A stretch of 64,000 nt of DNA from Salpingoeca rosetta (Eukaryota; Protista; Choanoflagellata), in the NCBI GenBank assembly GCA_033442325.1, contig JAWQFM010000013.1:1457847-1521846 (forward strand), read 5' to 3'. Position 1 is the stretch's first letter. Each line of letters opens with the position of its first letter. Both the position numbers and the translations under genes were made by a program. Shown here piece by piece: positions 1,138 to 40,414 of this stretch. The notes beneath the pieces were generated by a model. It searched no databases, was not told the DNA's origin, and saw only the letters and a program-made list of their open reading frames with translations.

Positions 1138-1168
<31 letters not shown>

Positions 1169-1179
1169 TGTCGTCGTCG

Positions 1180-1214
<35 letters not shown>

Positions 1215-2142
1215 GCTGTTGTTGTTGTTGTTGTTGTTGTTGTTGAGTGATGTGGGTTGGCGCTGCTTGCACGCCGGCCACCACCTGTCCCTGGTGTGCA
1301 GGGGCGGTTGCGCTGCTGGCCTCCCCTTCGACAGGAGCTTGCTGGGTCTTGCTTGTGGTGTCGGCTGTGCGGTCGATGGTGGTATTGCCATTGACAACAC
1401 TGCCAGCGGCACTCGTGGCGCTGCTGTGGTGGGCAGGTGCGGCATGGGCGTTGTGTTTGTTGACTGTGGCTGACGCAGGGGATGGTGTCACTGCCTGCTC
1501 TGGCGGGCGTCCGTGCTGCTGAGGATGCTGAGGCTGGGACGGCTGCTGCCATGCGAGAAATGGGGATGCATCGAACGATGGCATGCTGGCAACACCAACA
1601 GCACCGTGTGCCTGTGGGATCGGTTGCTGTGAGCTTGTGGCTCTGCCGGCTTGGCCAACTTGGGTGGAAGCCCTACTCGCAACTTTTGCGTTACCCTGCT
1701 GCTGCTGCTGCTGTTGCTGTTGGAGCGCGCCCTGCAAGATCGCCAGCTGTGACAGTTGCTGGCATGCAACCAGCGCAGCCTGCGGGCTGGGCCGATTGGC
1801 ACTGGTCGGGGACATGAGCCATTGTGTGAGGGTGGCAAGTGCCTGCATGTGCTGGGCGTCCGCGCCATGCCCTGTCCGAATCGCTTGCGCCTGTTGTTGC
1901 GGGTGCTGTTGTGGGTGTTGTTGTGGGTGTTGTTGTGGGTGCTGTTGCTGAATGGGATGCAGCGCTTGCGGTTGCAGGGGATCAGAAGAATGTTGTTGTT
2001 GCTGCTGCTGCCGTTGTTGTCGTTGTGAGCGGAGGAGAGTACGAGCCGTCGTGCCCGGGTCGTCCACAGCTTCGGGGGGCAACCAGCCCGCTCGACGTCG
2101 CTGCGGCTGCCGCGGTGGCTGTGTTGGCGGCGGCTTGCCCAT
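1..2142 (-). CDS. Glutamine-rich low-complexity hypothetical protein, 3'-partial (runs off window, >=714 aa)
   Basis: Manual translation from ATG 2142 (MGKPPPTQPPRQPQRR...) shows no stop down to base 1. Contains polyQ tracts and short amphipathic segments (LQQVLEALL, DALLALLQFF). Missing from the ORF track, presumably because no stop lies in the window. Upstream exons are possible. Confidence 0.7.
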
Positions 2143-3847: not shown

Positions 3848-4111
3848 TCAGGATGGCGGCACGCCAATGGTCGGGTAGACGTTGTCGAAGAGGATGCCGC
3901 AGGTGCCGCACACCTATGGCCAAAGCAGACAATAGCACGCGATGTGAATACATGAGCACTTAGGGTCACATCACTCAAGAATGGCATCGAGTCAAAGCGA
4001 CGAGAGGTCTGGGGAGGAGGGAGAAGGGTGTTGCAAGCACAACCCAGCAAGCATAACCCCCTCCCGCTTTACATCTCTCCATCTGTCTCTGTTTCTGTCT
4101 CTGTCTCTCTG

Positions 4112-4208
<97 letters not shown>

Positions 4209-4368
4209 CGCGCACACACACGCACGCACCTTGACTTTGTCGGGGCCGCCCTTGCAGCCGCTGCCGTCCTGGGGAGTGATGTCCATGCCACAGCGACCAC
4301 CCTGATGGGACAAGCGGGGCGAGGGGGCGAGGAGATAAGGAGGGGGGGGGAGTGAGGGGTGAGAAATG

Positions 4369-4426
<58 letters not shown>

Positions 4427-6365
4427 CCCGACCAATTGTGAGCTGATGAAACACTCAGTTTCACGTCAGACAAAAGCCTCAGACAACAAAACAACACATA
4501 CACATACACATGTATATTGTAATCGCACGTACACATTCACACGCCCACAAAGGGGGAGCAAAACAACACACAGGCAGAAGCACACGCAGTGCAGTACGAA
4601 TCACATGTCCTCCCTGCTCTTGCAAACACACACACACGCACGCGCGCGCGCGCGTACCTCGTTGGCGGTCCTGCGGATACGGATGTACCCGCTCTCACCC
4701 CAGTGTGGGGTCCAGCTGTTACGCACGAGCCAATAGCCCTGGGAGTTGTCGTCACCGTAGCCAACAAGCTGCACGGCGTGGTCAATGTCCGGGTTGGTCT
4801 GGTTGCAGCCATCAAAGATGCCGCTCTCGTAGTTCTTCCACTGTCGCCCAGCAGACACGACAACACCGGCAGCAGCAGCAGCAGCAGCAGCAGCAACAAG
4901 AGGGCAGGACCGATGATAACGGCAGAGGTGAGACGGAGCAGCAAAGAAAATTAGCCAAGTGGCACAAGCCTCCAAAATCTCGCACACGGGCGACAGTCAG
5001 CCAAGGACCTTTCGTCGCACAAAGCGACAGCAAGGATGGACAAGGACAGCCGGTAACGGGCGACAGACAACTACGGCGACTCACGGCAACGGCCTCGACG
5101 CTGATGGAGATGGGGCCCTTGTTGGCAATGGCGTCCATGAGGGGCTCGTACTGGTTGGAGGGAAGCTTGACGTACCCGGTCACGTTCACAACGGACATCT
5201 GCGCGGGATGCGTGGAAATAGGTTGAGGACCGGGACAGCGGTGTCAGCGTGCGTGCATGTGGAGGCGAGGGAATTACTTTCAGTGAGTGTGTATGTGTGT
5301 GCGTGTGTGCGTGCACAAGAGCAAACTTGAGCAATGCGCGGCGTGCAAGCAGCAGACAACCACGAGCAAGCAAAAGGAATCAAGCACACCTCCACAGCTC
5401 TGGCTACTCCCGCTCCCCTGGTCTACACCTCGAGCACACCTTCTCCTTGAAGTGGCACTTGTAGTTGTCGCCGTACCAGGACAGGTAGGGGTAGGTCCAC
5501 TCGGTCTGGAGACCGCCGTGCTTGGCCATCTAGTCACGCAACGACAACAAACACACAACATGAGCAGCGGATTACAACTTGCTGCATGCGTGTTTCTTCT
5601 CCCTTGTGTACACACACGCTCACACAAAACCACAACCCTGCGAAAACGGATGCGCACGCGCCCACGTCCACAACATGGAACGCACGTGCTCGTATGCAAT
5701 CTCGGCGGTGCCGCCCTGGCAGCCGCCAGTGCCGCCGCACTCCTCGGGGTTGGGCGTGCAGTCGAGGATGTTCTGCACAACCAAGGCAGCAAAGAAAAAG
5801 AATGAGAGTGTGTGTGTGTGAGAGAGAGAGTGTGTGTGTGTGTTTGTGTGTGTGAGAGAGAGTGTGAGTGAGTGAGTGAGTGAGAGAGTGAGAGAGAGAG
5901 TGTGTGTGTGTGTGCGACGTTGTTTGTGACAACAAGGTGCTGCTTTGTTTTGTGCAAGCACTTGAACGCGCACAACCGTGCATGACATCATCACACGGTG
6001 GTGCGAAAAGCTATGCAGTGGAGAATGTGGCACCACCCATCAATGCGTGTTACCACTACGCAGTCAACACGGCTCACCTGCTCGGACAGAACCTCGAGGG
6101 TACCGGTCTGGACGGCGACGTGGCTCTCGAGCGTCTCCGCGGAACCAAACGACCTGCACAGTCACCGCACACACACACACACACATGTTGATGCGGACAG
6201 GGACCAAGTCGCGTGAGCAGATTGTGCGTGTGTGTTTGGGGGGGGGGCTAATTGAGCAGCGCCAAGATGTCAGGACCCACTGAAAACCAGAAGCAACGCA
6301 CAAGGGATGCATGCATGCATGCATGCATACAGCAGCAGCAGCAGCAGCATCACCACCACCACAAG

Positions 6366-6416
<51 letters not shown>

Positions 6417-6642
6417 GTGCGCACCAGCAGGAGCCGCACTGGCCCTGGTCCTTGACGGCGGTGACGACGTGCTTGGTGCGCCAGTCGACAGAGTCGGGGA
6501 GGCCGTTCACATCAACGTTGGCCTGCAGTACAGAAAGACGGAGCGGGAAAGAAAGGGGGGGGGGAACAAGAAAGTGTCGGTTTGCGGATGAGCATGCGTA
6601 CGTAGAAATACGGGTACACCCAACTGACGACAGCAGGCTCGC

Positions 6643-6701
<59 letters not shown>

Positions 6702-7576
6702 TGAAGCCAGGGGGAGTAGGGCGGTGCAGGCTGTAGCCGATGCCCTTGTCATAGCCGAGGAGACGCTTGAACTGCAGGAGGCACAAGCAAGCAAGGGAGC
6801 AAACAAGTGAGCAAGCAAATACAAAAGCAAACGAGTGGGCAGGGAAAGCCAGCCAGCATGCATGAGCGACTGGTTCTGCATTCACACACACACACACACA
6901 CATAGTGTTGTTGTCTCGTATCACGTCACATCATGCCACAACAGACGGAGCGCGCTACATCATACGGAGACGTCAATGTCATGTTGTGTCACACCTCGCC
7001 ATCGGTCCAGTCGGACATGTGGTTGATGCCCTGCTTCCAGGTCTTGGTGGGGTCGCTGTTGTGGGCCTTGACAGATGCAAGGGTCTGCGCAGACAGGCGG
7101 TCAGCAGCCACTTGCACGTGAGAACCGCAGTTAAGCCGTGTACAAGGGAAGGGGGCTGGCAGCACTGAGCGCGCAGGTCAAGCAAGGCACAGCGCAGATT
7201 TCAAAAAACGTACGCGCTCAAACACTTGACGGCGGAAGTCATGCTCCTCAGAAGAGAGGTAGCGCTTGCCGTACTCGGCCTTGAAGTGCTGTGAACCAAA
7301 GCCACACAACAAGCAACCAAGTCGTCCAGTGAGTCAGGAGGTGGTGGTCGCTGTTTGTTGACATTTCGCCACCTTCCTGTTTGCCCTAGGGTGTTTGCAC
7401 TAAGCCAAAGCCTGATTGAAACACACACTGCAACACCCACTTTGCAACACGCATTGCTGCACAGGGCACACACGGACCTCAAAGGAGTAGCCATCGAGCT
7501 GGTGCCAGAGGGTCTTGGCAGAGACAGTGGTGGCCACAAGGGCGACCAGAGCCGCAACAACGACAACAGCACGCAT
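3848..7576 (-). CDS. Cathepsin L-like papain-family (C1A) cysteine protease, prepro form, 11 exons
   Basis: Signal peptide [16 protein letters not shown]29-type propeptide ([29 protein letters not shown]). Mature domain [18 protein letters not shown] (catalytic Cys), [10 protein letters not shown] (His), YWLVRNSW (Asn), ending [17 protein letters not shown]. Last five exons 5440-5529, 5085-5198, 4658-4840, 4230-4301 and 3848-3913 are phase-consistent GT-AG. Confidence 0.95.
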
Positions 7577-7851
7577 CGTGTGGCGTAAGTTTGTCTTTCT
7601 CTCTTCCTCCAAATCAGATGTAAAATGAGGGTGAAGCAACAAATGGCCCATCCCTTACAATGAGAGGAAAATCCCATTTGGACAGCCTTCGACAAATGAG
7701 CACTTCTCTCCAATTTCGCGTTGGCCCTCTCGCACTGCAAGCAGACACGTGAGCCAAGGGAACAAGCATCTCCCACGTTGTCTGCCAGCGAAAGCACACA
7801 GACCAACCCCCCCCCCCAACACTCCCAACACACACACACATCATCGCCGCC

Positions 7852-8070
7852 ATGTCGATGACAGTGCTGTACGAGTCTGCGGTGGGCTTTGCCCTCTTCG
7901 ACGTCGTGGAGACCGAGGAGATTGGCATCAGCCTCCCCTCCGTCCAGGTGTGGTGAATGAGAGCTTGTATCTGTGTATGTGTGTGTTTGACGTGTACGTG
8001 TGTGCGTGGTTGTGATTGTGCGTGGTTGTGATTATGTGTGGTTGTAATTGTGTGTGATTGTCGTGAATGG

Positions 8071-8101
<31 letters not shown>

Positions 8102-15162: not shown

Positions 15163-17461
15163 TCAAAAGCCACGCTCACAACACACCTTCCGACGATGTG
15201 CACTGGTGCCTGAGGTGGTGCGGTGCTTGGTCCGATCGTGATGATGTCCACGACGGTGGACGTGACCAGATGATGAGCGAGCATACCCAGCGTGGTTCAT
15301 GGCATCACCGTCATCGACGTAATCGTCGTCGTCGTATTCGCCGTCGTCGTCATCGTCATCCTCGACATCATCGTCGTCGTCAGCACGGCGATGGTAGTCA
15401 GCGAGCTCGTACAGCGACGTTGGTGATCCCTGCACACCGCTGCCAGGGCCACCACGCATTTGACCCGTGGCTCCCCGTCGGTCGTCAACGTGGTCCGGTG
15501 TGCCATGCAACATCGACGATGGCGGTGGCGGCAGCGCAGCAAGGTCGGCTGCAATCTCCAGATCACGATCGTAGGCAAGCGTGGCTTCAACAGCAGACCC
15601 ACGCGTGCCCATGCGATTCAGCCCCTGTCGGAGGTACTCCTGCACCTCATCCTGCCCGCCTTCGTGCTGCGTGTGCCGAGCGCGGCTGCGGTGGCTGCGG
15701 TGGCTGCGGTGGGATGAGGCAACACTCTGCGCATCACCACCCCCGCTCCGTTGGCCAGAGGACGCCCCACCACTGCCGCTGCTGGCCTTCACGCGCCCTT
15801 CAAACCGCCGGCGCCGGCTGCTCCGCGCCACATCCGAGTCAGACGAGTTGCCGTCGCTGCCATCGTCATTGCTACTGCTGCTGTTACTGCTGCTACTGCT
15901 TGTGCTGTTGCGACGTGAGCGCACATGCTGGTCCGCGGCGCCATGCCCATCATTGTCGCCGTTGTCGGGGTGGCGGTGGCGACGACGCTGCGGCACGTTC
16001 GCACTTGTCACGGCGTGGGGTGTGCGCATGGGAGTGCGGCCCTTCGGCGTGGCGTAGCTCTGGATGGAATCCCGGTGCACGTGGTGCAACCGCTCTCTGT
16101 TCAGCTCAAGCAGCCCGCGCGAGCTGCGGTTATCGTCCGTGTCCGTGGCCCGGGTTGGATCGACCGACTGGCGAAGCCGTGGCACTTCGTCCTGCCACGC
16201 AGAGTCTGGGCGGTCAGAGACTCGCGACACGCGGTGAGATGACGGCGGACGCTGGGACGGTGGGGGCGGCAGATGCACGGATGGGTGCCCGTGGTATGCT
16301 GGTGAGCGCGAGCGTGCACGGGACCGCGAGCGCGAACGCTGGCGCATGCGAACATGTTCGTTCTCATCAGCACCGTCGGCGCCATCAACATCATCCAGCA
16401 AGGTTTGAACGTTCACCGCCGTTTGCGATGTCGGCGTGCGCACGCGCGATGGGGAGCGGCGTACCCCGCTGAACGGCCGTGCAGAGTGCGCTGGGCTCGG
16501 TGGCGGGCGGCTGTGCGGCGTCACGTCCCGTGTGGGCACTGCGCTGGCCACACGCGTGCCCTGGCGCTGCGACGCTCCGCTGCGAACTGACACGTGGTCA
16601 TCAGTCTCCCGGCGAATGTTGGAGCTAGAGCGCACGCGGCCAGAGCCGGTGCCCTGGTCGGGAAACGCCTCCACAATCTCCCGGCGGCGGCGGCGTGGCG
16701 TGCGCGTGGGCGTCGTGTTCGCCGTGGCACCATGCGCTGCTGCTTCTGCTGCTGACATTGTCGTCGGCTCGTGGGTGCTGACGGCGCGGCTTGCTGTCGC
16801 TGCTGTTGGTGCCCGGCTTCGGCTTCGGCTTCGGCTTCGACTCCGGCTCGCATGACGGCTGCGGCTGGCTTGGCGGCTCAGCCTGCTTCGCGGGCGGTGG
16901 CCGTGATGGTGGTGGTGGTGGTGGTGGTGATAGTGGTCAGCGGCAGAATCTGGATGCAGGCGGTCCGTCATGTCCACGACCTGGTCGCCCTCAGGCAGCG
17001 GCTGCGCTGCAAACTCCTCGTCCGCACGATGCGCATCGACAATGGTGGGTGGCCCAGCGACCACGGCATACTCGTTCTCCTCCACCTCAGCACTGCCAGC
17101 GACGCTGCCGTGTGTGGACGCCATGTGGCGACTGGCGACGGAGCGTGGTGAAGGCTGGTGCGAGCGCGGTTGCAGCGGGCTGTGCTGTGGTGCCTGCTGG
17201 TCAGCAGGATTGCTGGGCGGATACATTGCCACGGGCTGTTGCGTTGTCACTGGTGGGTGCGCAAGGTGTGATTGTGGCGACGTTAAGTTTGAGGCGCCAT
17301 GCCCGTGCTGCGGTGCCGGGGGATACATGCCCGTTGGTGCAAATGCACCGGCATTGTACTGCTGGTGCTGGTGTTGGTGCTGTGGTTGTGGAGCTGTTTG
17401 GTAATATTGCTGCGGCTGCTGTTGCTGTTGCTGATAGTGTTGCTGGTGTTGCTGCGGGTAG

Positions 17462-17505
<44 letters not shown>

Positions 17506-20500
17506 AGGGGCCGCAAATGCATGAGGTGGATGGTATGGCTGAGGTACAGCAATGTGACTGGGAGCATGACTGGGGGCATGGCTAGGGGCATGGCTAGGGG
17601 CATGGCTGTGAGCGTGGCTGGGGGCGTGGCTGTGAGCATGGCTGCGAGTGGACATGGGCGTCGTCGCTCCACCGCCGCGGCCCTGCGAAGGCATTGGACT
17701 CACGCCAGTGTCCCGGACACTTCGGGTGTGAGAGACATTGCCCCGTGCATCTTCACCGAGGGGATCACCCTCAACCGCCCCCGTCTGCAGGTCTTTGTCG
17801 TCAATCAGAAGCATCTGCTTGCTTGGTGTGGCGTGCGATGTGTGCTGATCGTGCTGGTGCGACGCACTTGGTCGGCGAGAGGTGGCAGCAGCCTCGCTCT
17901 CACCATGGCCATCCTTGTCACCGTCGCCATTGTGTGTGCTGGCGTTTGCATCGCTCTTGTTGTTGTCGCCTGCATCAGCAACGCTGCCACCTTCGCCGTG
18001 CACGTCCACCATCTTGGCGTCCTCAGGATCAAACTTCTCACACGAGAACGAGGCATGCGAGAAGTCAAACCCACACAGACAGCGGTGGTGGCACTTGCAC
18101 GTCGGGTGCTCGCACTTGCACTTGTGCCTACATCTGCAGTTGTGGTGCATCTTCCTGTGCATCTTCTTCTTCTTCTTCTTCTTCCTCTTCTCCTTCGCCT
18201 CAGCTTCGGCCTTGGCCTTGGCCTCTGCCTCCTCATCCGTTGTTGGTTCACCATCGTCAGAGGCCGTGCGAAGGCGGAGCGTCACGCCGTGACCGTTGCT
18301 CAAGTACACACGCTGCCGCTTGCGTCGTCGCTTCTCCTCGGCAAGCTTTGCCTCTTCCTCCTCCTTCTGCTTGCGCCTCTGAGCAGCAAGCCATGCTGCA
18401 TACTTGAGACGCTTGCAGCGCCAGCAGCGGTTGCGGTCACGCAACGTCTCCGCAAGCAGCATGCGGAAGCCACCATTCAACAGGAACCCACCCCGCGCAC
18501 TGCTCTCAGACTCCTCAGAATCATCACTGTCATCACTGTCATCACTGTCGCTGCTGCTGCTCTCACTGCCGCTTGACGAAGAAGACGAGGAGGAAGACGA
18601 CTCATCGTCATCGTCCTCCTCATGGCAGTCACACATGCAGCAGTGCTCAGTGTCGCTGCTATCCCCGCTGGAAGTGCTGCCAGAGGAGCCCGTGGAGCTG
18701 CTGTTGGCGCTCTCCGAATCACCATCGTCACCATCCGAGCGAAGTTCAGGAAAGTACAGCTTGAGAATGTCGTACAGCGTGGCGGGGCGCGCCTTGTCTG
18801 CGGCCTTGCGCTTCTGACGACGACGACGACGGCGGCGGCGGCGGCGCTTTTCCTTCGCACGCTCCTCTGCTGCAGCCGCCTCGCGTTCTTGCTGCTCTTT
18901 CTCCAGCGCGCGACGGTACGAGTCAAGCAGGTGGTGGATGCGTGACGCAAGATAGTCCTCAGCCTCGCGGTCTAGCGTGATCTGCGGTGGAAAGCGCCCG
19001 TCAAACTCAACGATGTCGCGCAGAGGAGTTTTTCGCCCAACAAACGGACAGCCGTCACCCGGTTTGCCGTCATCATCCGAGCCATCACCGTCGCCCTTGT
19101 CGTCTGTGGGCAAGGATTCCAGCACCCACTTCTTGTCGCCAATCTTCACCGTGAACAGCTCGGTGCCCTTCTGCACAGCCCGCGCTTCTTCCTCGCTGTC
19201 CTTCTTCTTGCTCTTCTTGGACTTCTTCTTGCTCTTCTTGGACTTCTTCTTGCCTCTTTTCTTCTTCTTGTCTCCCTCGTCGTTGTCATCGTCGTCATTG
19301 TTGTTGCTGTTCATGATGAGACGAAAAGCCATCTTGCCTCCACGAGCAGGTCCCAGCTTCACCAGCCGCAGCTTCCCGCGGTCATCAGCCGTCTGCGAGG
19401 GTGTGTACACGTACAGCGCTGGCGTGAGCTTCTCCTCGTCCAGCAGCACAACGGCCTGCTGTTTCTTCACGGGCGACTCAAAGATCTCCACATCTGCAAG
19501 TGGCGGCACGTAGTCGTCCTCGCTCACAAAGATGAGCTCGCGCGCTGATCCTGGTGGCAGCGGCTTGCCGTCTTCACCGGGCATGGGCATGGCAAACACC
19601 CGCCCCGGCGAGAAGCCAAGAAACCCCGCAGCATCGTCATCCCCATCGCCGCCTTGCTTCTTCTTGTCGCTCTTCTCATCATCCTTGTCCTTGTGCTTCT
19701 TGCTCTTCTTCTTGGGCTTCTTGCCCTTCTTCTTCTTCTTCTTATCATCCTCACCATCCACGACATCACAGATATTGCCGTTCTCGCCACAGATCATCTG
19801 AAACACCAGCCCATTCCGCAGTCTGCGTCGTTCCTCTTCTTCCTTCTTCTTCTGCTCGGCAGCCACGTGCTTTTTCGCCTTGCGCTCCTTCTCACGTCGC
19901 TTCTTCTCACGCTCCATGTGCAGCTGAAACAGCTCTTCAAACGTGCGGGGCTCCTTCTCCTTTCCCTTCTTCTTCTTCTTCTTCGCCTTTTCCTTCTCCT
20001 CCTTGTCCTTCTTCAGCGGCACAATGCGGATGTGCCCATCAGAGTCAATCTTCACTGTCACTTCATCTCCGCCGTCATCGTCATCGGCATCGCTGTCTGA
20101 ATCGCTACTGCTACTGCTGCTGTCGTCACTGTCATCGCCACCTTGGTGTCCGCACAAGACCATTAGCTGTTCTTCGAGCGTGAGTGGCTTGTCCTTGTCT
20201 CCATGCTTGGATGCGTTCTTGGCCTTCTTGTCCTTCTTCTTCTTCTTCTTTTTCTTTTTCTTCTTCTTGTCCTCCTTGGCATCCGCGCGTGACTCGTCCA
20301 CAATCTTGTATTCGTGTCCGTCGATGATGATGGAGGCGTTCCACTTGTCCGCGTCGTCATCCTCCTCCTCATCGTCATCCTTGTGCTTGTCCTTCTTCTT
20401 CTTCTTCTTCTTCTTCTTCGCCTTCTCTTTCTTCTTCTTCTCCCTCTCCGTCTTCTTCTTTTCCTCTTTTGCTGCCTTGAGCAAGTCTGCGCGGCTCATG

Positions 20501-22024
20501 AGCTCCAGCTTGCCGTTTCGCGTCGTAAACACAAACTCATTGGCCAGGCGGTCCTTCACAAACTCCTCCTCGTGCACCTGGTCGTAGCAGTTGCTGCAGA
20601 ACAGGTCGCTGCACACAGTCAAGTTGAAGTCGTCGAGCGTGGACGTATCGGCCTGCGACTCCGACGAATCGTCATCAGACTCATCCTTGTCCTTCTTCAA
20701 GTTGTCGAGGTAGAAGGAGACCAGCTTGCACGGGCCAGAGCACGCCGTGGAGGTGGTCGAGTTTGCATCGCCTTCGCTCTCGCTCATGCAGGACGAGTCA
20801 ATCGCCGCAAACACGAAGCGGCCCGTGTTGTCGTTGCGGTGGCACTTGGAGCACGATGCCTTCTCCCCGCGCCTCTGCAGTGAGCGGAACAGTGCCTGGC
20901 GCAGGAGCTGTGGCGACTCGCGCGGAGGGCTGGGCAGTTCTGCAGCCACAAGCCTGGCAAGCTCTTCCTCATGAAGTCGGCACGCCTCCTTGAACGCTGC
21001 CGCTTGCTGCTTCGCCGCTCGCTCGGCGCGCTTCTTGTCCTCCTTGCGCTTCTTCTTGTCCTTCTGCTTGTCCTTCTCATCGTCATCCTTGGCTTCAATC
21101 ACCTGCCGCACCAACGTGCCGGAGCGTGTGCGCCGAATCACGAGCTTCGGACGGCACTTTGCATCAGACCCTTCCTGTGCCTCCATCGATGCGTTGGACG
21201 AGTCTTCAGCATCATCATCGTCAACATCCGTCTCGTGCATGCGTGAGTCCATCAGGCGGTCAAAAACGGCAAACGGATCCTCAAAGTCGCGCAGCAAATC
21301 ACCAATGGTGTCCTTTGGCCGAATGCCTGCGGTCAATTGTTTGTGTGAGCGGGGCGTGTGAGTGTGTGATGTGATTGAGTGTGTGAGTGTGAGTGTGTGA
21401 GTGTGAGTGTGCGTTGGGAGTGTGTGAGTGTGAGTGTGTGAGTGTGAGTGTGCGTTGGGAGTGTGTGAGTGTGTGAGTGCGTGTGTGAGTGTGTAAGTGT
21501 GTAAGTGTGTGAGTGTGTGAGTGTGTGAGTGTGTGAGTGTGTGAGTGTGTGAATGCGTGAGTGCGTGAGTGCGTGAGAGAATGTGTGAGTGTGTGAGTGC
21601 GTGAGAGAGAATGTGTGAGTGTGTGAATGAGCCAGTCAGTCATGTGTGTGAGTGTGTGAGTGCGTGAGAGAGCATGTATGTGTGTGCAAAGTAGAGGCGG
21701 TGAAAGACACATGTGCCTGTGACGTACACTCGACTTGTGCACATCATGGTCAGTCGAGCATGCGATGAACACACTCTCCTAGAGATAGCTCTCCACACGT
21801 GAACATGGATATTTCCATAGAACCCTAACCTTGTCGCTTCTTGGTTTCCTTGTCGACCTTTTCTTTGCGTTTCTTGCGCTCTCGACGATCGAGTGCATGC
21901 AGCGCTTCGAGCTGCTCAGCAGACTGCAAACACGAAACATAATGGCAGCATGCGGAAGTGTTCAGTGTGCATGTGCGTTGTATTTGTCGCGAGGGTGTTG
22001 CATGTTGCGTGTTGCGTGGTGTGC

Positions 22025-26856: not shown

Positions 26857-27120
26857 CTATGATGATGCGGGCTGCATGAGGCCCAACCATCCTCGGGTGC
26901 GAGACGTCGTGGAGTGCAACACCTGCGATGACAACAACAGCAGCAGCGGAGACGGGTGAGGAGATGAGAAGCAATTGCAACTAGACACAGATGCATTCGC
27001 GAGGATATGTACAGAAATGTGGGTGTTTCTGTTGGTGACGCGAACCTCTTCGTGCTCTTTTGGGGTGAACTGCAGTATCGTGGAAATGACCTTGGCCAAC
27101 TCCTACATGAGCACAAGTGA

Positions 27121-27161
<41 letters not shown>

Positions 27162-27890
27162 AGTGAGTGAGTGAATGTGCGTATGCGTGTGTGTGAGTGT
27201 GTGAGTGAGTGTGTTTGTGTGCAAGGAGTGGCTGCATCTGCGAGACAAAAAAAGTGTTGGGTGTTGGTTGGCATATGCACACACACGCGCATACGCATAC
27301 ATAACAAACACATACATAACACCACACACACACACACACCCAGCGCGTACCTCCTGGTGGGAGCCAAGCATGTATTGGTAAACGACGTTCTTGAGATACA
27401 GCAGTTGGTTATCGGTGTCGGACCTGTTGGAAGCAATGGAATCACACAGGAAAACGAAGAATGTGCGTGTGTGCGAGTGTGTGGGTGAGTGAGTGAGTGA
27501 GTGAGGGGTGGAGGTAAAGGGGGAGGTAAAGCCAGCATGCACGCACATAGCGACACACCCACGCACACCCACGCACACCCACGCGCACACACGCACACAC
27601 TGAATAGTGTCACGAATAGCACGCACTTTTGCTGTTGGAGGACAGCGAGTCGATCCTTGAGGTCTTGGATGTGCTGCTGCTGCTGCTGCGTGGATAAGTC
27701 ACTGCCAAGCGCAGTCTCGGGGCTGGCCTGCAGCGCAAGCTGATGCGTCTTCACATCCAGCTCGTGTTGCAGCTGTGTGATGTTGGTGCGATGGCAGGCA
27801 TAGAGTACATGAGCAAGCCTCACAAACAGGGACACAACCACATTCTCGCATAACAAGACGCACACACACACGCACACACACACACACACA

Positions 27891-27931
<41 letters not shown>

Positions 27932-29289
27932 GCATGCACGCATACGCATGCACGCACACACACGCATGCACACACACACGCACGCACACGCATGCACACA
28001 CACACACACCGCAGCGCAGGGCACCTGCTGGATTTCCTCGTCGCGGGCTGTTAGCGCATCATGGAGTTCGTCCACTTGCTGCTGTAGCTTTTGCAACGCG
28101 GCTTCCCGCTCTGTCGCCGCCTCTGTCAACTCAGCAATGTGTTGCTGCTGTTGTTCGACCTTCGCCTCGAGCGCCTGTGCTTGCTGCTCGTCGCGTTGCC
28201 TGTTCTCCTCATCATCATTCTCCTCGTCGTGTGCGGCTGCACTGACAACGAGATCAGCGACCATCGCCACAATGCGACGGGCGCGCGCCTGCAGCTGCAT
28301 CTCACTGCCGGCACCACTGCCATCACCATCTTCTTCATCGGCTTCCTCCTCCTCCTCGTCGTCGTCTTTGATGGCGAGATGTTGTTCAAGATCAGCAAGC
28401 AGCGATTCAAACGAACGCCGAACACTCGCAGCAGCGCCTTCCTCAGCTGCCGCCCGATCCTGTTGATTGGTTGTTTGGGATGGGTTGTTGGCCTTATGTG
28501 AGCAAGCGAGTGTGTGTGTGTGTGTGTGTGTACGTGTACTTTGTGTGATGGTGCGAGCAGCGTACGCAGTGTCAACGCAATATGTGTGTATGTGCAGGGC
28601 AGAACCCACAACACCAAAGGTGCATGTGCAACAGCACGTGCTATAACCTGCATGGCGAGCTTCAGCTGCTTGATCTCCGCCTCGTGATCATCACGTTCGC
28701 GTGTCAACGCTTCAACCCGCGCCTCCAGCTGTATCGTCGCACACATCCGCACAGTGCACGCACATGAAGTGAGCACGCCGACGCTCGTGCAACCATACAC
28801 GCACGCGCGCACACACACGCACGGACACACATGCACGCACACTGTTGCACTGACTGCTTGCCCCTCAACCTTCCCTCTCCCAACGTGCCCTCTCCCAAAT
28901 ACACACTCACACACGTGTATGTGTTCACCTTCTGTGCGCGGTCGTCTGTCTCCTGTGCAGCGTGCTGCTTGTCCTCGTGTGCCCTGTCCGCCTCCTCCTT
29001 CGCCACCTGCAGCTCAAGCTTCACCTCGGCCAGTGCCGCTCGCTCCTCTTCAAGTGCACGTGCAATCTCCTCCGCTTCCGCCGTCTTGTGCTCAAGCTCG
29101 CTGCGCACTGCTACCAGCTGCGTGTCTCTCTCCGCCATCTCAGCCTTGAGCCGCTCCACCAGCACTTCCGTGTCCTCCAGTGCTTGCTGCATCTCGCCCA
29201 TCTCCTCCTTCATCTCTGTTGTCGCTGCTGCTGATGACTCATCGCGCACCGCCAGCTGCGCCCGCACCGCATCCAGCTCCTGTGGCGGT

Positions 29290-29387
<98 letters not shown>

Positions 29388-31305
29388 GTGACCATCGTAG
29401 GGCAACATATACACATGCATGAGAGGTGTGCATGAGGATATGTAAATGGCTTGTCACGCATGCATGCTCAGACACACGCATAACCACACACGCACACAAA
29501 CACACACACACGTACCCGCGCACGCACACACACGCACACGCAAACACAAAGCAAATACACACACACCTGCTGGGCCTGTAGCAGCTCTTCCTTCTTCGCG
29601 TTGAGGGAAGTGATGACAGACTTTGCCTTTGAGCGCAGCTTGGCAATCAACGTTGCGTTGTTCTGTGCATCTTCCTCCAGCTGGGGCACCTTCTCTGCCT
29701 CCTTTTTCGCCTCTCGCAGCTGCTCCTTCAGCTCGTCCATCTGTCTCGCTGCCGCGTCCTTGTCCTTCAGTTGCTCTCGAAGGTCAGACAAGTGCTCGTT
29801 CAGCTCCTCTTGATTGCGCGCCTTACTCTCAAGCGCCTTCACTTCCTCCTTCAACGCCTGCATTTCCTCGGCGAGTGCCTCTGCCTGTTGTTCTTTCTCC
29901 TCCTTCGCTGCGGTCACTTCGTCTAGCGTGGCAGCCAACCGGGCCATCTCCTCCTTCGCCTGCTTTCCCTCCTCCTGTGCTGTCTCTACTTCACCTTTCG
30001 CCGCTTCAAGCTGTGCCTGCAAGGATGCCTTCTCCGCCTGCACCGCCGCCACCTTCTCCTCCGCCTCCACCAACTGCTCCTGTGCGTGTGCATGTGCGCG
30101 TGCTTCTTCTTCCAGTGCGTCAATGCGCTGTGCCAGCTCGTCGCGCGCCTCACGCACCGCTGCAAGCTCACCCTCCAACGCGTCCACCTTCGCTTCAGCC
30201 GCCTCCTTGGCCTCTGTGGCAGCTGCAACCTCTCGTGCCAGGGCCTCTGTGCGCGCCTGCTGTGCCTCTGCTTCCTCCTTTGCAGCAGCGACAGCGGCGT
30301 CACGCTCATCCATTGCCTGCTTCACGCTGTCCATCTCCTTCTGCAGGGCGTCGCGTTCACCCTTGACCTCCTTCAGCTTGGCCTTAAACTTGTCAAACAA
30401 GTTTGTCTTCTGCTTCGCCGCGTCTGTTGCTTCCTGCAACTGCGCGCGCTCGCTGCTCCACTCCTCAGCCTTCTTTTCCATCGCCTACAGATGCAAAGGG
30501 AGGACGCAGGTGGATGGGTGAGGGAAGGTGGGAGGGAGAGGTATATTGAGGGAGTGAAGGGGGGAGGTGAAGGAGGAAATGTGTGAGGGCAGGCGCGTGT
30601 GATTGTAAAAGAGGGATGTGTGTGGAACTGTTTGTGCAGTGCATGTGTTCATGTGCACACACTCAGACATTCAAGCAAACAAAAGCACACAAAATAAAAG
30701 CACATTGACACGAGTTTCGTATCCCATGGCAACAGCACGTAACAATTAAGCTCCCCGGCCGCACCTGCTTTGCTTCCGTGGCCGTGTCCAACTCCTTGCT
30801 GAGCTGCTCACACTTCTCCTCCAGCTTCCGCGTTGCCTCCACGGCCGCGTTCATCTCCTGCTCGTACAGCTGCGCCCGGCTCTGTGCTTCCTCTTGCGCC
30901 TGCACAGCAGCAGCGCGTGCTGCCTCAAGCTTCTCAAGGTCGTCTGCCTTGGCTTCAAGCTGTTCCCGCAGCGCTGCCACGCCCTCCTCATTTGCGCGCA
31001 CCTGCGATGCCAACTGTCCTTGAAGGTCTTCAATCGTCTTCTCCGCCTCTGCGTGCTGTGCCTGCACGGCATCAAGCTTCGCCGCTAGCTCCTGCGTCTG
31101 CTTCCCGCCATCCTCTTGCTCTGTGCGCAGGCGGTTGTTGTCCTCCAGCCAGGCCTTGGCTTTCTCCTTCAACTTTGACAGGCGAACCTAAATACAAGCG
31201 TGTGAGAGCACGGGGTGTGAACGTTACATGGTGTGATGACTCATGTGTATGGAGGGACATCAAACCCATAAAGATTGGGCCTCCCAGCACGCACGCACGC
31301 ACACG

Positions 31306-31351
<46 letters not shown>

Positions 31352-34300
31352 CGCTTTGCACATGCACGCTCAAGCAGACACGTACACTTACATCCACACA
31401 TACGCACACAAGCATGTCCACAAGCATGTGCACGCCGCACAGTTCCACATGCACATGCACACGCACACGCACACGCACACGCACACGCACACACACGCAC
31501 GCACGCACGCGTACCTTCAAGGAGTTATTTTCCTCCTCAAGGGCGGTGTGATGCTCCTCCGTTTTCGCTTCAAGTGTGGCCTGCAACCCCTTCAAGTCGC
31601 TGCGCAGCGCCTGCAGCTGTGTCTCCTTCTCTTCAGCAACAGCGATGCTGGATTGCTCGCCGTCCTCCTTCGTTGCTGCCAGCGCTGCCTGCAGGCTTTC
31701 AACCTGTCCTTGAAGGTCCTCCACCTGCTCGCGGGCAGCCTGAGCGCCCTCCGTGGCCGTCGCCAGCTCCTCCTTCACCTCCGCCAGCTCTGCGGCGATG
31801 GCGTCGCGCTCCCTGCACGCCGCCGTCTCGCCCTCCGTCTGCTGCGCGTGCGCGTCTTCGAGCTTCCCCTGGGCGACCTCCAACTCCAGTGCCAGCTTCT
31901 GCACCTCCGCTGTCAGCTCGTCCACCTTGCCCGTCGCCGCCTCCGCTTCGCTCGCCTTCGATTGCAGCGCTTCCGTCAATTCAGCCATGTCCTCCCCCAG
32001 TTCCTTGCGCGCATCCTGTGCAGCACGCAGCTGCTCCGCCCTCTCCTCCTTGTCCACTTGCAGCGCTGACAGCTGTGCTTGAAGGGAGGACCGCTCCTCC
32101 TCATGCTCGGCCTTCAGTTGTGCAATCTGCTCCTGTACGCCTGCGCTGGACTGCTGGTGCTCCTCGGCCTGCCTGGACGCGGCGTCGACCTTCTCCCTGA
32201 GCGAGGCGACCTCCTCCCTCGCCGCTTGCAGCGCCGTCGTGGTCGCCTCGAGGTCAGCGCGTACCGCCTGCTCCTTCTCCATCGCAGCCCGCCCCTCCCG
32301 CAGCCACGTCTCCGCCTTGCCCTTGAGCTTCGTCAGGTGCACCTGCAACTCCTTGATCTTCCCCGCTTGCTCCTCCGACCGCTGTGTGGCTGCCGTGTGG
32401 GCTGCCTCTGCCTCACCGCGCACCCGCTGCACCTCCGCCTTCAACGCCGCCACCTCCTCTTCCTTCTGCTGCACAGCGCTCGCCTGTGCCTCCCTGTCTG
32501 CCTTCGCTGCTGCCACCTGGTCGGTCAGCGTTGCGGCACGTGCCTCTGCGTCCTCCTTTGCTGCTGTCAGCTCACGTGCGCGTGCGTCCAATGTATTTAG
32601 CTCCTCTTGCAGTGCATCTCGCTTGTCCTCTGCTTCCTTCAGCGCCGTTTGCAGCTGCTGCATTTGTGTTGTCGTCTCGGCAGCAAGCTTCTCTCGATCC
32701 TCCTCCCCCGCAGACTGTGCACTCTCCAGTGCCGCTTGCAGCTCGCTCACCTGCGCCTCTGCTGTGTCCGCACGATCGCTTGCTGCCTTCTCCTCCTCCT
32801 GTGCACTCTCCAGTGCCGCTTGCAGCTCGCTCACCTGCGCCTCTGCTGTGTCCGCACGATCGCTTGCTGCCTTCTCCTCCTCCTGTGCACTCTCCAGTGC
32901 CGCTTGCAGCTCGCTCACCTGCGCCTCTGCTGTGTCCGCACGATCGCTTGCTGCCTTCTCCTCCTCCTGTGCACTCTCCAGTGCCGCTTGCAGCTCGCTC
33001 ACCTGCGCCTCTGCTGTGTCCGCACGATCGCTTGCTGCCTTCTCCTCCTCCTGTGCACTCTCAAGTGCCGCTTGCAGCTCGCTCACCTGTCCCTGCATCT
33101 GCTGCTTCACTTGCTTGGCTGCCTCCTCGCTGCCCTCCTGCACAGATGCCTGCAGTTCGGCGAGCTGTGTGCGCAGGGCGTCTCGCTCCTTCTCCGCCGC
33201 GTCCACCGCCTGTCGGTGCTCCTGTGATTCCCGCAGCCACGACTGCGCCTGGCACAATGACAACACGTGGGCCGCGAAGCAGAGGTGTGTGTGTGTGTGT
33301 GTGTGTGTGCACAAGTTGACGTAAAGTTCCGTGGTGGCTGCTGTGTGCGAGGGTTGGTTGCGGCACGCCTTGCTTGCTTGCTTGCAAGCACCACACACTA
33401 CACACCACACACCGAATGCATACACAGACCTTATCTTTCAGCTTTTGGTGCTTTTCCTGCAGAGACGACAGCGACGCTTCAACGCTCTCCTTCTGCATGC
33501 ACAAATACACGCGAGCGCAAGAAAGTTGCAGCATAGGGTGAGCAATCAGCACACGCCTCATGCCTGAGATCACACACGCAAACAAACACACAAGCAAACA
33601 CATGCACGCATGTACGCGCACGCACTGCCAAGGAATCCCGATATTCAGCAAACCACCACCACCACCACCACCACCACGACATCATGTGTTCGTTTGCACC
33701 TGCTCCTGCGCCGCTGTGAGCGCGGCCTCTGCCTTCTCAGCGCGCGACTCCGCAGCAGCCTGCACCAGCGGGCACGTGTGTGTGTGTTGTGTATTGTGCA
33801 TTGTGCGTGTGAGTGTGTGTGTGAGTGTGGGTGTGAGTCAGTGAGTGAGTGAGTGGAATCGATGAGTGTGTGATTGCACGAGTGCGAGAGAGACGCCGAA
33901 GGGCGACAACGACAAGGAAAATTGGCATCACACGCATTTGATTCAGGCGCAGGTGCTCGCAGGAACAAAATACCACTCACGAGCTTCTCATTCAGGCTGG
34001 CCATGTCCGCGTTTGAAGCAGCGGCAGCATCAAGAGCGCTTTGCTTCTCTGCCTCAAGTGCCTCCACCTGCTCCTGCGACGCAGCCAGCTCCTGGCCACG
34101 CATAGTCATGGTGATGCAAACACCCTCGTAAGCACGCGCGCTCACGCTTGCACACAGCGACAGCACTGCTGACAACAAAAGTTGTCGATTGTGCCACAGC
34201 AACAGCACACACACACACACAGAGCCGCAACACACACCTGCTTCAGAGCGGCGATGGCATCATCGTGGCTGGTTTGCAGTTCCTGAGCGCTAGCCTCCAG

Positions 34301-34672
34301 CTCATCAACACGCGCACGCAGCGCTGAGCTTTCGGTCTGGCCCGCGTCTGACCAAGGGACGCGTGATGGTGGCGATGGTTTTGAGATATGTGTGCATTGT
34401 GGGTGTGATAACGTGTGGATATTTGAGTGGATACGTGTGTGTTTAGGTATGTGTGCATTGTGGATGTGTGGATGATTCTGTCGGAGATCAGGGGCTGACA
34501 CGAACCGAGTTGTTGTTGAAGACCTTTCGCTTCTTCCTTCAGCTTTGCCAGCTCCTCCTATCATGCCATATGCAAGTGAGAACAGCAGTTAGAATGAGGT
34601 TAAAACCCGCATGTAAGGAAGACAGGGTCACAACCAAAACCCACGCCATACACGACGCAGGCACACAATGTG

Positions 34673-34718
<46 letters not shown>

Positions 34719-34979
34719 CTGCATGATTAGCAGTCCGTCTATCCACCGACACCCCCCCCCCCTAGCGGTTACCTGCTGTTGGGCCAACTGCTCCTTGAGG
34801 GTTGAATTTTCTTGCATCATGTCGTCCATGCGGTGCATCATGCTCTGCTTTTCCTCTGTCACTGTGGCAGTGGCGCTGTCCTTCTGCTTGCGCATGCGTG
34901 CAATCTCATCCTCCAACTCGGCGATTTTCGCCACCTGGCGCGCATGCTCCTCGTCATCCGCATCAGCTGCGTGTGTGCA

Positions 34980-35032
<53 letters not shown>

Positions 35033-35508
35033 GTGTGTGTGTGTGTGTGCATGTGGTGTGTGTGTGTGCATGTGGTGTGTGTGTGTGTGTGTGTGTGTGC
35101 GTGTCAATGTATTGTTGTCTTGGTTGTAGGAGATCGCAGTTGGAAAAGCAGAGAGAACAACCATCCTGTTTCGTGTAAGCATGATAACCACCACCACCAC
35201 CACCACCACCACCATGACAACAATGCGTACATGAGAGCTTTGCGGCGTGTGCGGTGATGTACTGCTCCAGCTCCTGCAGATCAACCCGCCCGTCACCGTT
35301 GGCGTCAATTTCCGCCCAGAAGTCCTTGGGCGGATAAGTTGGAGGAGGAATGTTAGGGGTTGGTGGTGGTTGTTGGGTGAGCGGCAAATTGGGAGTCAGG
35401 GGGGGGGGCGAATGCACGTGGCACGCGATCGATATCATGGCAGGCCTCCACACAAGACAACGCGCAAGACACAATACACATCACATCACGCCACACTTCA
35501 CACATCAC

Positions 35509-35563
<55 letters not shown>

Positions 35564-36198
35564 ACACACACACACAGATCAGACACCAGGACAGGACGGC
35601 ATGTGCATGCGCGCACCTTCCACCTGCGGCCCGCGATTCCAAGCTCCCTGCGCATACTGTCATCGTCGTGGATGACGCGCTTGAGCTCACGGTGGGAGAG
35701 AACGCCGTTGCCGTCGCGATCGGCGGCAGTGAACAGCTCGCGTGCGCGCTGTAGCACTCGTTCCTCTGAGGTGGTGGTGTGGCGGTGATGGTGATGTGAA
35801 CAAGGGTGCAGTATAGCAACAAGGCGGAATGAACACACACACATACATACATACATACATACATACATACATACATACATACATACATACATACATACAT
35901 ACATACATACATACATACATACATACATACACACGCGCACGAAACACAAGACACAAGGCCAATGCACCTGTTGGAGCGCTGAGTGTCTTCAGCTGCGACT
36001 TGAGTGTGTTCCTCACATACTCCGCCTCGCTCAAATTCTCCGAGAGCGATCGGTTCTGTTGCAACAGCTCATCAATGCGCGCGGCCATCTCGCCCTCCTT
36101 CTCCTCCCACGCCGCTGCGGCCTTCGCGTGCTCATCAGCAGCCGCACGCAGCCTGTGTTGTGTTGTGTGTTGTGTTGTGTGTGTTGAGTTGTGTTGTT

Positions 36199-36278
<80 letters not shown>

Positions 36279-37513
36279 GCAGCAGGGATGCACGCGCAAC
36301 AGCTCACCCTTCTCGCATACGACCACAACCAACACAATCACCATCTTCTCCTCCTCCTCCATCACCAGTACCAGCACCACAACCATCCGCATCATCTGGG
36401 CACCAACGCACTCTGCGATGTCCTGTGCGTGTGTGTCTGCGGTGTCGGCTGCGGCCTTGAGTTCATCGCGCTCTTTCGTCAGCGACGCGACCTGCTCCTT
36501 GAACGACCTGCAAGGGCGTCACGTGATGGTGGTGGTGGCGGTGTTGAGTGAATGACGAGTGAGTGAGTGAGTGAGTGAGTGAGTGTGTGTGTGTGTGTGT
36601 GTACAGTGAGTGAGTGTGTGTGTGTGTGTGTACAGTGAGTGAGTGAGTGAGTGAGTGAGTGCGTGCATGAGTGAGTGTGTGTACAGTGAGTGAGTGAGTG
36701 AGTGTACAGTGAATGAGGGAGTGAGTGAGTGTGCGCGCACGCTCGAATGGCAGTGACAGCGGTGACGCAAATGCTCGAAACAGCTCACACACACATGCAC
36801 ATGCACATTCGCATGCATGCACGCGTCCGTACTTGATTGTTTCCTTGCATTTGGCCAGCAGCTTCTCGTGCCGTGCCAGCTTCGCCTTTGTTGCCTCCAC
36901 GTCCTGCCCTTCCCTCTCCGCCTTAACCTTCGCCTGCTCCTCCCTGTCGGCCTGTGCGCCGGCTGCTGCGTTCGCCTGCTGCTGCAACTCGACCTTAAGT
37001 GCCTCCACCTGCGACTGCAGCACTCGTCGCTCCTCCATCTTCTCCTCAGCACCCCCGAGCTCAACCCGCAGCGCTGCAACCTGAACACACACACACAACA
37101 CACACACACAACACACACACACAGACATGAGTGGAAGGAAGGCGTGAATGGAAGCGGGACGTAAGCAGGCGTGTATTTGTGTGTGTGAACACAAATAGTG
37201 CTATGTCGGATGCAGCCACTCCAAACAGCACACAACACGCTAAAATGATGTGTGTATGTGCGTGCATGTGTATGTGTGTATGTGTGTGTGTGTGTGCAAT
37301 GCGCCACCTGGCTCTGCAGGACGCGGTTTTGCTCCTGCGCCTCCGCCATCTCGTTGTTCTGGATCTTCAGCGCTTGCACCTGACCGCGGACACGACGGGC
37401 GGTGCAAAGGGAAGGGAAGTGGAGCGTGTGAAGCAGGGTGTATGTGTGTGTGTGTGTGTGTGCGTGTGAGTGAGTGGGTGAGTGTGTGTGTGTGTGTGCG
37501 TGTGAGTGAGTGG

Positions 37514-37575
<62 letters not shown>

Positions 37576-37687
37576 TATGCACATCAAACGCGCTTCAGCC
37601 ATCCGACACACCACTACTCCGCCTTCGACGTTTCATGCCAGTGCATCACCACCACCACCACCACCACCACCATCATTACCCTCACCC

Positions 37688-37736
<49 letters not shown>

Positions 37737-37747
37737 TACCCTCACCC

Positions 37748-37831
<84 letters not shown>

Positions 37832-39076
37832 CCTGTGTCTGGAAGACGCGGACCTGCTCCTGCTGCTCCTCCAGCTGGTTGGCGAGCGCCTGTCTCTCTG
37901 CCTGCGCCTCAGCCAATCGCTGCTTGTACTTCTCAACCCGTTTCACCTGTCGCCACCACCACAACAGCAGCACGCATCGCCCCATCCATGGCCCCGTGAA
38001 GGCGGTGATGAACCAATTTGGGCAAGAAGCACCGATACTGACATCACACAACAACGACACGCAGCTCTGCAATGTAATGTGTAATGCGCAAACGCACACA
38101 CACACACACACATGTGCGTGCAAACACAAGTACACGTGCACATGGCCATCGCACGCAACGCACACACACACCTGCTTCTGGTACGCCTCTGCGGTGATGG
38201 CTCCCGGTGCAGCGGCCTTGTTGGAACCCGGCAGGCTCGTGTCAGAGCCCTGATACGTACGACGTGGGGGTGAGTGCGTGAAAGGACGGAAATGTGAATG
38301 TTGAAGCAAGGATAAGTGCTTGTGCTTGTCGTGTGAGTGGTTGATTCAACACCACATGTACCTGCTTCGGGAGGTCCTTTGGCTTGGTCGCATCCTGCAG
38401 GCAATCAAGCAAATGTGGTGAGAGTCGCATCCAGATATTTTGCTTTCACGTACACACACACACACACACACACACGAGACGGTAGTCAGTCATAGATACG
38501 CACTGCACGACGATGGTTGTGTGTACCTTCACGGCGCCCTCCATGCGCTTCTTCAAGGAGGAGAACATGCCGCCGGCCTTCTTTGGCTTGGGCGTCTTGT
38601 CAGTGGCACTGGCATCGCTGGTATCGGCCTATCGTCACACGAGCACGAGCAGGGCTCAGGGTGAGCGACAAAAGCCGGGCATTTGGGTGTTCTTGTTGAA
38701 GTATCACTCCCATGCATTCCAGCCACAAAACGCACGCACACATGCACGCACACACGCACACACACATGCACGCACACACGCACACACGCACAGGGACGCA
38801 CGCACACACACACACAACCCACACGCTGGCAAACGTGTTTGCACACACCCCACATGCATGTGCTGTCACGCTTGCCTTGTTGGCTGAGGATGAAGATGCG
38901 GGTTCAGTGTCAGCGGTTGCGGGATCGGTGGTGGTTTGCGGTTGCTTTCCGTTTCCGGCCGGTTGCGCTTCCTTCTGCTTCGTGTCAGTGGCACCTGTGC
39001 TCGCGGAGGACTCTGTCTTTTCCTCCTCCTCCGCAGCCGTGCGTTCAATCACCTTCTTCTTCAGCCCAGCAAACAT
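26857..39076 (-). CDS. GRIP-domain trans-Golgi golgin (GOLGA4/golgin-245 or golgin-97-like) with an internal EF-hand pair, multi-exon
   Basis: N-terminus MFAGLKKKV resembles animal GRIP golgin starts. [12 protein letters not shown] resembles GOLGA4. Long E/A/Q/K coiled-coil exons lead to a C-terminal GRIP domain [12 protein letters not shown]...[16 protein letters not shown]...RGWLG. Confidence 0.85.
32716..33089 (-). repeat. Coding 84-bp tandem repeat (about 4.5 copies) in the golgin
   Basis: Near-identical units encoding [28 protein letters not shown] (28 aa). Confidence 0.95.
35511..35930. repeat. (TA)n and (TACA)n microsatellites in golgin introns
   Basis: (TA)n at about 35511-35559 and (TACA)n at about 35842-35930, representative of dozens of intronic simple repeats. 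Confidence 0.9.
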
Positions 39077-39272
39077 CGTCGTCGCTGGTGCTGGCTGTTG
39101 TGTTTGTGTTGTTGGTGTTGGTGTTGGTGTGCTGTGTTGTGCTGTGTTGGTTGTGCCGGCTTCTGCTGTGTATGTGGAGGTGAGACAACGGCCTAAAAAT
39201 AGGACAGTGGTTGCTGCATTTGCGACGTGAGACTGAGGCGAACGACAACCACCACGACCACGCCAACACAAG

Positions 39273-40414
39273 ATGACAACAGGCAAGCAAGAGATGTGCG
39301 AGAGAGCTTGCGCTTGTCTTTGGTAGCTAGCCGTGTTGACGGGCCTGAATGAGGCTTGATCTCGACTGCAGGGCTCGCGTTCTCACGCGTCTGCGGGTGG
39401 CATGCATGCATGCATGCTTGCTTGCTTGCTAGCTTGCTTGTGTGGTTCTCTTTCTTGTCTTTGATCTATGTCGCTCACCTGTGTGTGTGTGTGTGTGTGA
39501 CTTCTTTTGCTGTTTGTGGGTTGTTTGTCAATCCCTCAGCGCACCGCCCCACATGGACACCCGCCCAGGGTGGCAAGGGCAAGTACGACTCCAGCCTCGG
39601 CCTAATCTCCCAGCAGACATCTGTTCGCGATGCACCGGCACACACCAAGCTCAAATTCAGGTGTGTGCGTGCGTGCGTGTGCGTGTGTGCGTGTGTGCGT
39701 GCGTGTGTGGGTGTGTGCGCGTGTGTGTATGCGGTCACAGGCGCATTGCTTGATGCTGCGCACGACAAACAAGTACATTCCTCTTTCATTCGTGCTCTGT
39801 CGCAGGCACGATGTTGAGACCAAGGACGAGGAGGAGATGAAGCGCGAGCTTGAGCAGCGCGAGGCCAAGCACTTTGACGACATTCGCAAGGAAGAGGAGA
39901 AGCGGGGTACGTGTCGATGGTGTGTGCGTGTGTATGTGTGTTGTGTGTGTTGTGTGTTGTGTGTGTGTGTGTGTGTCTTGTGTGTGTATGTGTGTGTCTT
40001 GTGTGTGCGTGCGCCCTTGTGTGCACTTGTTTGTGTGCGCTTGGCGTGTGTACGCTTGTGTTTGTGAGCGCGCCGGCTTGCGTGCTGTCTGACGCCTCTG
40101 GCTCGCCTTGCCGGCTTGCCTAGCTACCACGCTCCTCCCTTGCCTGTCTTTCATCTCACCGTGCGTGTACGCGTTGGGCCGTGCAGCGGGCATCACCGCC
40201 ATCACGGGCGCGGCGGACGAGGCAAAGACATCGAGGCCGTCAAAGCTGCTGGCCATCACCACGGACGAGGCAGACGAAGACCTGCCCGAGGATGACGAGA
40301 GTGCGGACGAGAGCGACAGCGACAGTGATAGCGACGATGATGACGATGACACGGCGCAGCTTCTTGCTGAGCTGGAGAAGATCAAGAAGGAGCGCGCAGC
40401 GGAGCAAGCACGCA

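Follow-up and report, generated by a model that had tools for sequence, protein, structure and literature searches.

An EF-hand pair encoded within a GRIP golgin gene of Salpingoeca rosetta: a candidate calcium input to a trans-Golgi tether

Introduction

Can a golgin of the trans-Golgi network (TGN) carry a calcium sensor within its own coiled-coil rod? The common view of golgins is that of passive ropes under the control of small GTPases, and we know of no protein of the golgin-245, golgin-97, or Imh1 type that carries an EF-hand insert. The question is raised by a 64,000-nucleotide stretch of the genome of the choanoflagellate Salpingoeca rosetta (the window, to which all plain coordinates below refer). 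A sequence-only reading of this stretch proposed that two exons of a GRIP golgin gene encode canonical EF-hand loops, that the intron phases of these exons (1-0-1) fit those of the flanking coiled-coil exons so that the pair forms a symmetric module, and that the pair arose by exon shuffling. A literature search found no paper on an EF-hand-bearing GRIP golgin and returned nothing for the probable locus tags of the gene; the protein itself is already in public databases, where it has gone unremarked.

Results

A 27-exon golgin gene

Exon-by-exon reading of the minus strand yielded a 27-exon model at 26857-39076 that encodes 2,083 residues, or about 2,000 residues when the two EF-hand exons (exons 10 and 11, hereafter the cassette) are left out. 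No exon of the model contains a stop codon, and all 26 introns (112-453 nt) have GT-AG boundaries. Twenty of these introns are in phase 0, three in phase 2, and three in phase 1; the cassette is flanked by two of the latter. The overall coding range and the exons needed to place the cassette are as follows.

26857..39076, minus strand: whole coding range, with the ATG at 39076 and the stop codon at 26859-26857
35968..36152, minus strand: exon 9, the coiled-coil exon upstream of the cassette, with a Pro-containing break followed by a phase-1 end; sub-threshold coiled-coil Pfam matches only
34773..34966, minus strand: exon 12, with a phase-1 start, an acidic linker, and then coiled coil again (searched as 34773-34964)
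31515..33248, minus strand: exon 18, the largest coiled-coil exon (578 aa), with an 84-bp repeat inside
26857..26922, minus strand: exon 27, a short C-terminal tail and the stop codon

Sequence searches were run on individual exons rather than on the joined product. All large internal exons matched only coiled-coil Pfam families, and these only below the cut-off (e.g., Filament and ATG16), and the Atlas look-alikes of exon 20 were fragments of HOOK, GM130, and periplakin, i.e., generic coiled coil. The approximately 2,000 residues between the Met-Phe start and the GRIP domain are predicted on this basis to be coiled coil. The 123-nt intron before exon 27 is in frame and would still be readable if retained.

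Several further features of the gene and its surroundings were recorded. The repeat in exon 18 is a coding repeat of 84 bp (28 residues) at 32715-33089, present in 4.5 copies; as the copies are 99% identical, the expansion appears to be recent. The golgin gene lies head to head with a gene for CWC15, which is 100% identical to PTSG_05731, and the approximately 196 nt between the two coding starts (39076-39275) probably mark a shared bidirectional promoter. Downstream of the golgin gene, 2,158 codons (15166-21639, minus strand) without a stop, very rich in Lys/Glu/Asp/Ser low-complexity runs, are probably a single giant exon of the next gene; a word search with this frame, which was aimed at the annotated 3' end of the golgin gene, was dominated by low-complexity words and yielded no match.

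GRIP domain and N-terminal motif

Assignment of the protein to the golgins rests on its two ends, which are encoded by the following exons.

27351..27423, minus strand: exon 25, N-terminal half of the GRIP domain, including the Tyr of a Y-L-K-N-V motif; Pfam GRIP score of 20.0-20.7 bits
27046..27102, minus strand: exon 26, C-terminal half of the GRIP domain; Pfam GRIP score of 23.9 bits, profile positions 26-43
38870..39076, minus strand: exon 1, a Met-Phe start followed by a basic (Lys-rich) stretch; by translation, a putative vesicle-capture motif like that of golgin-97/245

Taken alone, each GRIP half scores slightly below the cut-off of 24.4 bits for PF01465. The two halves are, however, encoded by consecutive exons, in the right order, and match complementary ranges of the profile (positions 4-17, and up to 4-22, for exon 25), with a sum of about 44 bits against that cut-off; a scan of the S. 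rosetta genome for GRIP domains also matched exactly 27046-27102. As judged from these profile matches, the predicted golgin carries a genuine GRIP domain that is split across exons 25 and 26. The Tyr of the Y-L-K-N-V motif in exon 25 aligns to the start of the Pfam GRIP profile and is probably the invariant Tyr that contacts Arl1 in the golgin-245 structures. A PDB sequence search with the 24-residue GRIP exon found nothing.

At the N-terminus, exon 1 had no Pfam or PDB match, and its likeness to the golgin-97/245 capture motif presumably extends beyond Phe2. Exon 2 (38527-38628) contains a second Met-Phe plus basic motif, approximately 90 residues into the protein; by its sequence, this motif may have arisen by internal duplication of the capture site. 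In golgin-97 and golgin-245, vesicles are captured by the first 21 residues, with a conserved Phe2 (Wong 2017, PMC5267433), and it is this 21-residue motif that the Met-Phe and basic N-terminus of the S. rosetta golgin resembles.

At least three more loci with a GRIP domain were observed in S. rosetta (G000:C2:337162-337284, C19:118941-119222, and C5:806490-806603). Outside the metazoans, one GRIP golgin per species is stated to be typical (Wong et al., PMC5267433), and the presence of these further loci suggests that an animal-like set of GRIP golgins may predate animals.

Two exons encode a canonical EF-hand pair

The cassette consists of two exons and the intron between them.

35617..35765, minus strand: exon 10, entering helix, canonical EF loop 1, exiting helix, and linker; phase 1 to phase 0
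35325..35616, minus strand: phase-0 intron between the two EF-hands, six codons ahead of the first Asp of loop 2
35231..35324, minus strand: exon 11, EF-hand 2; entered in phase 0 and left in phase 1; the sole AAG acceptor in the golgin gene

Conceptual translation of 35617-35763 and 35231-35324 on the minus strand recovered both of the 12-residue loops that the sequence-only reading had quoted, each in a helix-loop-helix context and with a spacing of 29 residues between them. As read from this translation, positions 1, 3, 5, 9, and 12 of both loops are occupied by ligands that are either acidic or polar, position 6 by Gly, and position 8 by a hydrophobic residue. The two exons also matched the Pfam families EF-hand_1, EF-hand_5, EF-hand_6, and EF-hand_7 when searched separately; the E value was 3e-5 for exon 10, whereas the match of exon 11, at 8e-6, reached the gathering score of 25.4. 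These matches are not due to chance, because a six-frame search of the S. rosetta genome identified nine paralogous copies of exon 10 elsewhere, in tandem on contig C3 (51-68% identity, E values down to 4e-13).

Both exons are bounded by an AG acceptor and a GT donor, and their lengths of 149 and 94 nt give the intron phases 1-0-1. The introns 5' and 3' of the cassette are both in phase 1 and match the phases of the flanking coiled-coil exons, and joint skipping of exons 10 and 11 preserves the reading frame. The proposals that these exons encode canonical EF-hand loops, that their phases fit those of their neighbors, and that the pair is a symmetric module within the GRIP golgin gene thus all held.

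In the protein, the pair occupies 81 residues (approximately residues 379-459 of the model) and is separated from the rod by short linkers that are not helical, with a Pro-containing break before it and an acidic linker after it. The pair, together with the extra N-terminal-like motif in exon 2, distinguishes the S. rosetta golgin from golgin-245 (GOLGA4), golgin-97 (GOLGA1), and yeast Imh1, with which it shares a C-terminal GRIP domain and, by prediction, a very long coiled coil; at approximately 2,080 aa, its length is close to that of golgin-245.

The cassette belongs to a local EF-pair family

The closest relatives of the cassette are tandem multi-EF genes at G000:C3:565000-571100 (locus L009), in which the copies found on contig C3 are spread over two neighboring genes. 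The first has four EF-pair units and the second has five and runs on into a coiled coil. Identity between the cassette and these units is 51-70% over the whole unit (up to 70% by tblastn), and the similarity includes the inter-hand linker as well as the helix that follows loop 2. In contrast to the cassette, the C3 units are encoded by phase-0 exons, with introns that interrupt loop 2 after its position 4 and before its position 5, have one extra linker residue, and lack GRIP. A contig C3 gene as the direct exon donor was therefore ruled out, as its introns fall within loop 2 and not in the linker; with no exon boundaries shared with the closest paralogue, no donor gene can be named, and the outer boundaries of the cassette are common to none of the paralogues found.

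The position of the internal intron is, by contrast, found elsewhere in the family. Three EF-pair genes (C1:3352472, C22:277842, and C1:90387) have the same phase-0 GT-AG intron between the hands, at the position of the internal intron of the golgin cassette; their pairs are 39-56% identical to the cassette and differ from it in being N-terminal and followed by acidic low-complexity tails. Comparisons of the cassette with six C3 units gave dS values that were 1.4 or above or saturated, with dN of 0.28-0.41 and dN/dS of 0.14-0.27, which argues for an old and constrained module.

With regard to how the cassette came to lie in a golgin gene, the presence of paralogous units elsewhere in the S. 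rosetta genome, an internal intron whose position is conserved in the family, and two phase-1 flanks in a gene whose introns are mostly in phase 0 support the earlier proposal of exon shuffling. By its sequence relationships, the pair can be assigned to a choanoflagellate-local EF-pair family, and the data fit a scenario in which a phase-1 intron of the golgin gene would have received the cassette as a genomic module of two exons, with purifying selection acting on it thereafter. A word search with exon 10 (within its 211-aa open frame) was blank in the 116-369 aa class; such a search covers proteins whose length is 0.55-1.75 times that of the query, and the longest stop-free piece of the golgin has 725 residues. 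A metagenome scan with exon 10 was also blank.

Some additional observations concern the relatives themselves. In L009 (G000:C3:563000-572999, approximately positions 1100-8100, minus strand), both multi-EF genes begin with the same short N-terminal peptide, each unit lies on a phase-0 exon cut within loop 2, the coiled coil of the second gene is approximately 300 residues long, and the array consists in part of near-identical segmental duplicates. In the genes of the same local family at G000:C1:3352472-3352609, C22:277842-277955, and C1:90387-90473, which have an N-terminal EF pair with an intron between the hands, the tails are acidic, Gln-rich, or of Lys/Glu-repeat type.

Inclusion of the cassette in the transcript

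Indirect evidence bears on whether the EF exons are part of the mature golgin mRNA. First, the annotation of GCA_000188695.1 (placed by locus L010, with positions equal to window + 29272) contains a minus-strand gene whose upper end lies exactly at window position 39076, the ATG of our model. The annotated product, which was compared by start and length only, has 2,081 aa, as opposed to 2,083 in the model and approximately 2,000 without the cassette; the model gives exactly 2,081 aa if the acceptor of exon 18 is moved 6 nt downstream. This annotated product has no Pfam record. Second, the share of sampled 31-letter words of 34700-36300 that was found in eight sequencing runs from two studies, which we guess to be RNA, was 0.33-0.34. 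For an intron-free transcript that contains all of exons 9-12, a share of 0.32 would be expected (50 +/- 6 of 157 words), and for one that lacks the EF exons, a share of 0.20 (32 +/- 5), a difference of about 3.5-4 SD. From annotated length and word share, we infer that the EF exons are included in the mature mRNA.

A different reading is that the cassette is alternatively spliced and mostly skipped, such that the main isoform is a plain golgin and the EF-hand form is minor or condition-specific. Removal of both EF exons is, as noted, neutral for the frame, the AAG acceptor of exon 11 is unique in the gene, and exon 9 has an internal phase-0 GTGAGG donor that could join downstream phase-0 acceptors; the acceptor and this donor together make alternative forms possible. 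We nevertheless consider predominant skipping to be quite unlikely, as the word share in the eight probable RNA assemblies matches full inclusion, the annotated product length requires the 81 residues, and the donor sites of the EF exons are typical of the golgin gene.

HMMER comparison of exon 23 (145 aa) against a representative library of 1.84 billion sequences recovered neither the golgin itself nor relatives, so that either the protein lies outside the library or the annotated model lacks exon 23. The sole match in this search, a cadherin-repeat protein, was rejected, as the similarity was through acidic low complexity.

That the EF exons lie outside the golgin mRNA altogether, either as unexpressed relics or as part of a nested gene, and that the agreement in length is a coincidence, appears very improbable: while the golgin itself was missing from the matches in the representative library, and the annotated protein was compared by start and length, the introns around the cassette (202-292 nt) leave no room for another gene, exon 10 could not start a coding sequence of its own because it is entered through a split codon and has its only Met after the first loop, the phases are compatible on both sides, dN/dS is well below 1, and the word share agrees with inclusion.

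Discussion

A possible calcium input to the tether

On the evidence above, we give a little better than an even chance to the reading in which exons 10 and 11 are normal parts of the coding sequence of a tether of the golgin-245/97 type, into which an EF-hand module was inserted, retained, and now acts through Ca2+. The intact EF loops argue for Ca2+ binding, as a prediction from sequence. If both loops bind Ca2+, binding would be expected to open the hydrophobic cleft of the EF pair, and, since the golgin presumably dimerizes in parallel, two such pairs would lie side by side. The opened pairs could then alter the local stiffness of the rod and form a Ca2+-dependent hinge near the capturing end; alternatively, they could alter binding of a helical partner approximately 380 residues from that end. 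With either outcome, vesicle capture at the TGN would be coupled to cytosolic Ca2+.

A precedent for such behavior is available, as the EF pair of CRACR2a, which lies beside a coiled coil, binds a helix of dynein LIC1 in a Ca2+-dependent manner via an opened hydrophobic cleft (PMC7655957). The more specific proposal, that the S. rosetta tether is Ca2+-gated, with EF modules that would bend or collapse the rod or recruit a helix (e.g., that of dynein LIC), such that vesicle capture or positioning at the TGN tracks Ca2+ transients, is tentative, and we regard it as rather unlikely in this full form.

The pair may instead be structural, i.e., either unresponsive to Ca2+ or always Ca2+-loaded, and provide a fixed break, a hinge, or a dimer contact in the rod. 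Conserved breaks are a typical feature of golgin coiled coils, and purifying selection on the cassette is equally compatible with a structural role. Ca2+-independent EF pairs also exist; those of FIP3 and ninein have degenerate loops and act independently of Ca2+ (PMC7655957). EF-hands of this kind usually lose the canonical ligands, as in FIP3 and ninein (PMC7655957), whereas all canonical ligand positions are kept in both loops of the golgin pair, and a purely structural role is thus unlikely.

Finally, the pair could dock a motor, in which case it would bind a dynein LIC helix, with the coiled coil running along dynactin and the GRIP domain on the TGN, possibly as a Ca2+-gated adaptor. The order of EF pair, long coiled coil, and C-terminal small-GTPase or membrane module is the same as in CRACR2a, Rab45/RASEF, Rab11FIP3, and ninein, and the nearest C3 paralogues likewise join EF pairs to a coiled-coil tail. 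Unlike in the EF-hand dynein adaptors, however, the golgin pair is internal, approximately 380 residues from the N-terminus, the C-terminal module is a GRIP domain, and kinship in sequence is that of generic EF-hands only, as the family matched calmodulin-type EF-hands best among PDB sequences, rather than those of adaptors. No sequence signature predicts LIC1 binding (Lee et al., PMC7655957). We consider motor docking distinctly unlikely.

Implications

If the reading of exons 10 and 11 as a Ca2+-responsive module of the tether is true, a Ca2+ sensor in a golgin would represent a direct route from Ca2+ signaling to vesicle capture at the trans-Golgi, of which we found no earlier description. 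Choanoflagellates are the closest living relatives of animals and S. rosetta is genetically editable; as the cassette can also be removed in frame, the idea is testable in this organism. Exon shuffling has been discussed mostly for extracellular proteins of animals, and the golgin locus, in this one species, is a clear example of how exon shuffling can insert a domain outside animals.
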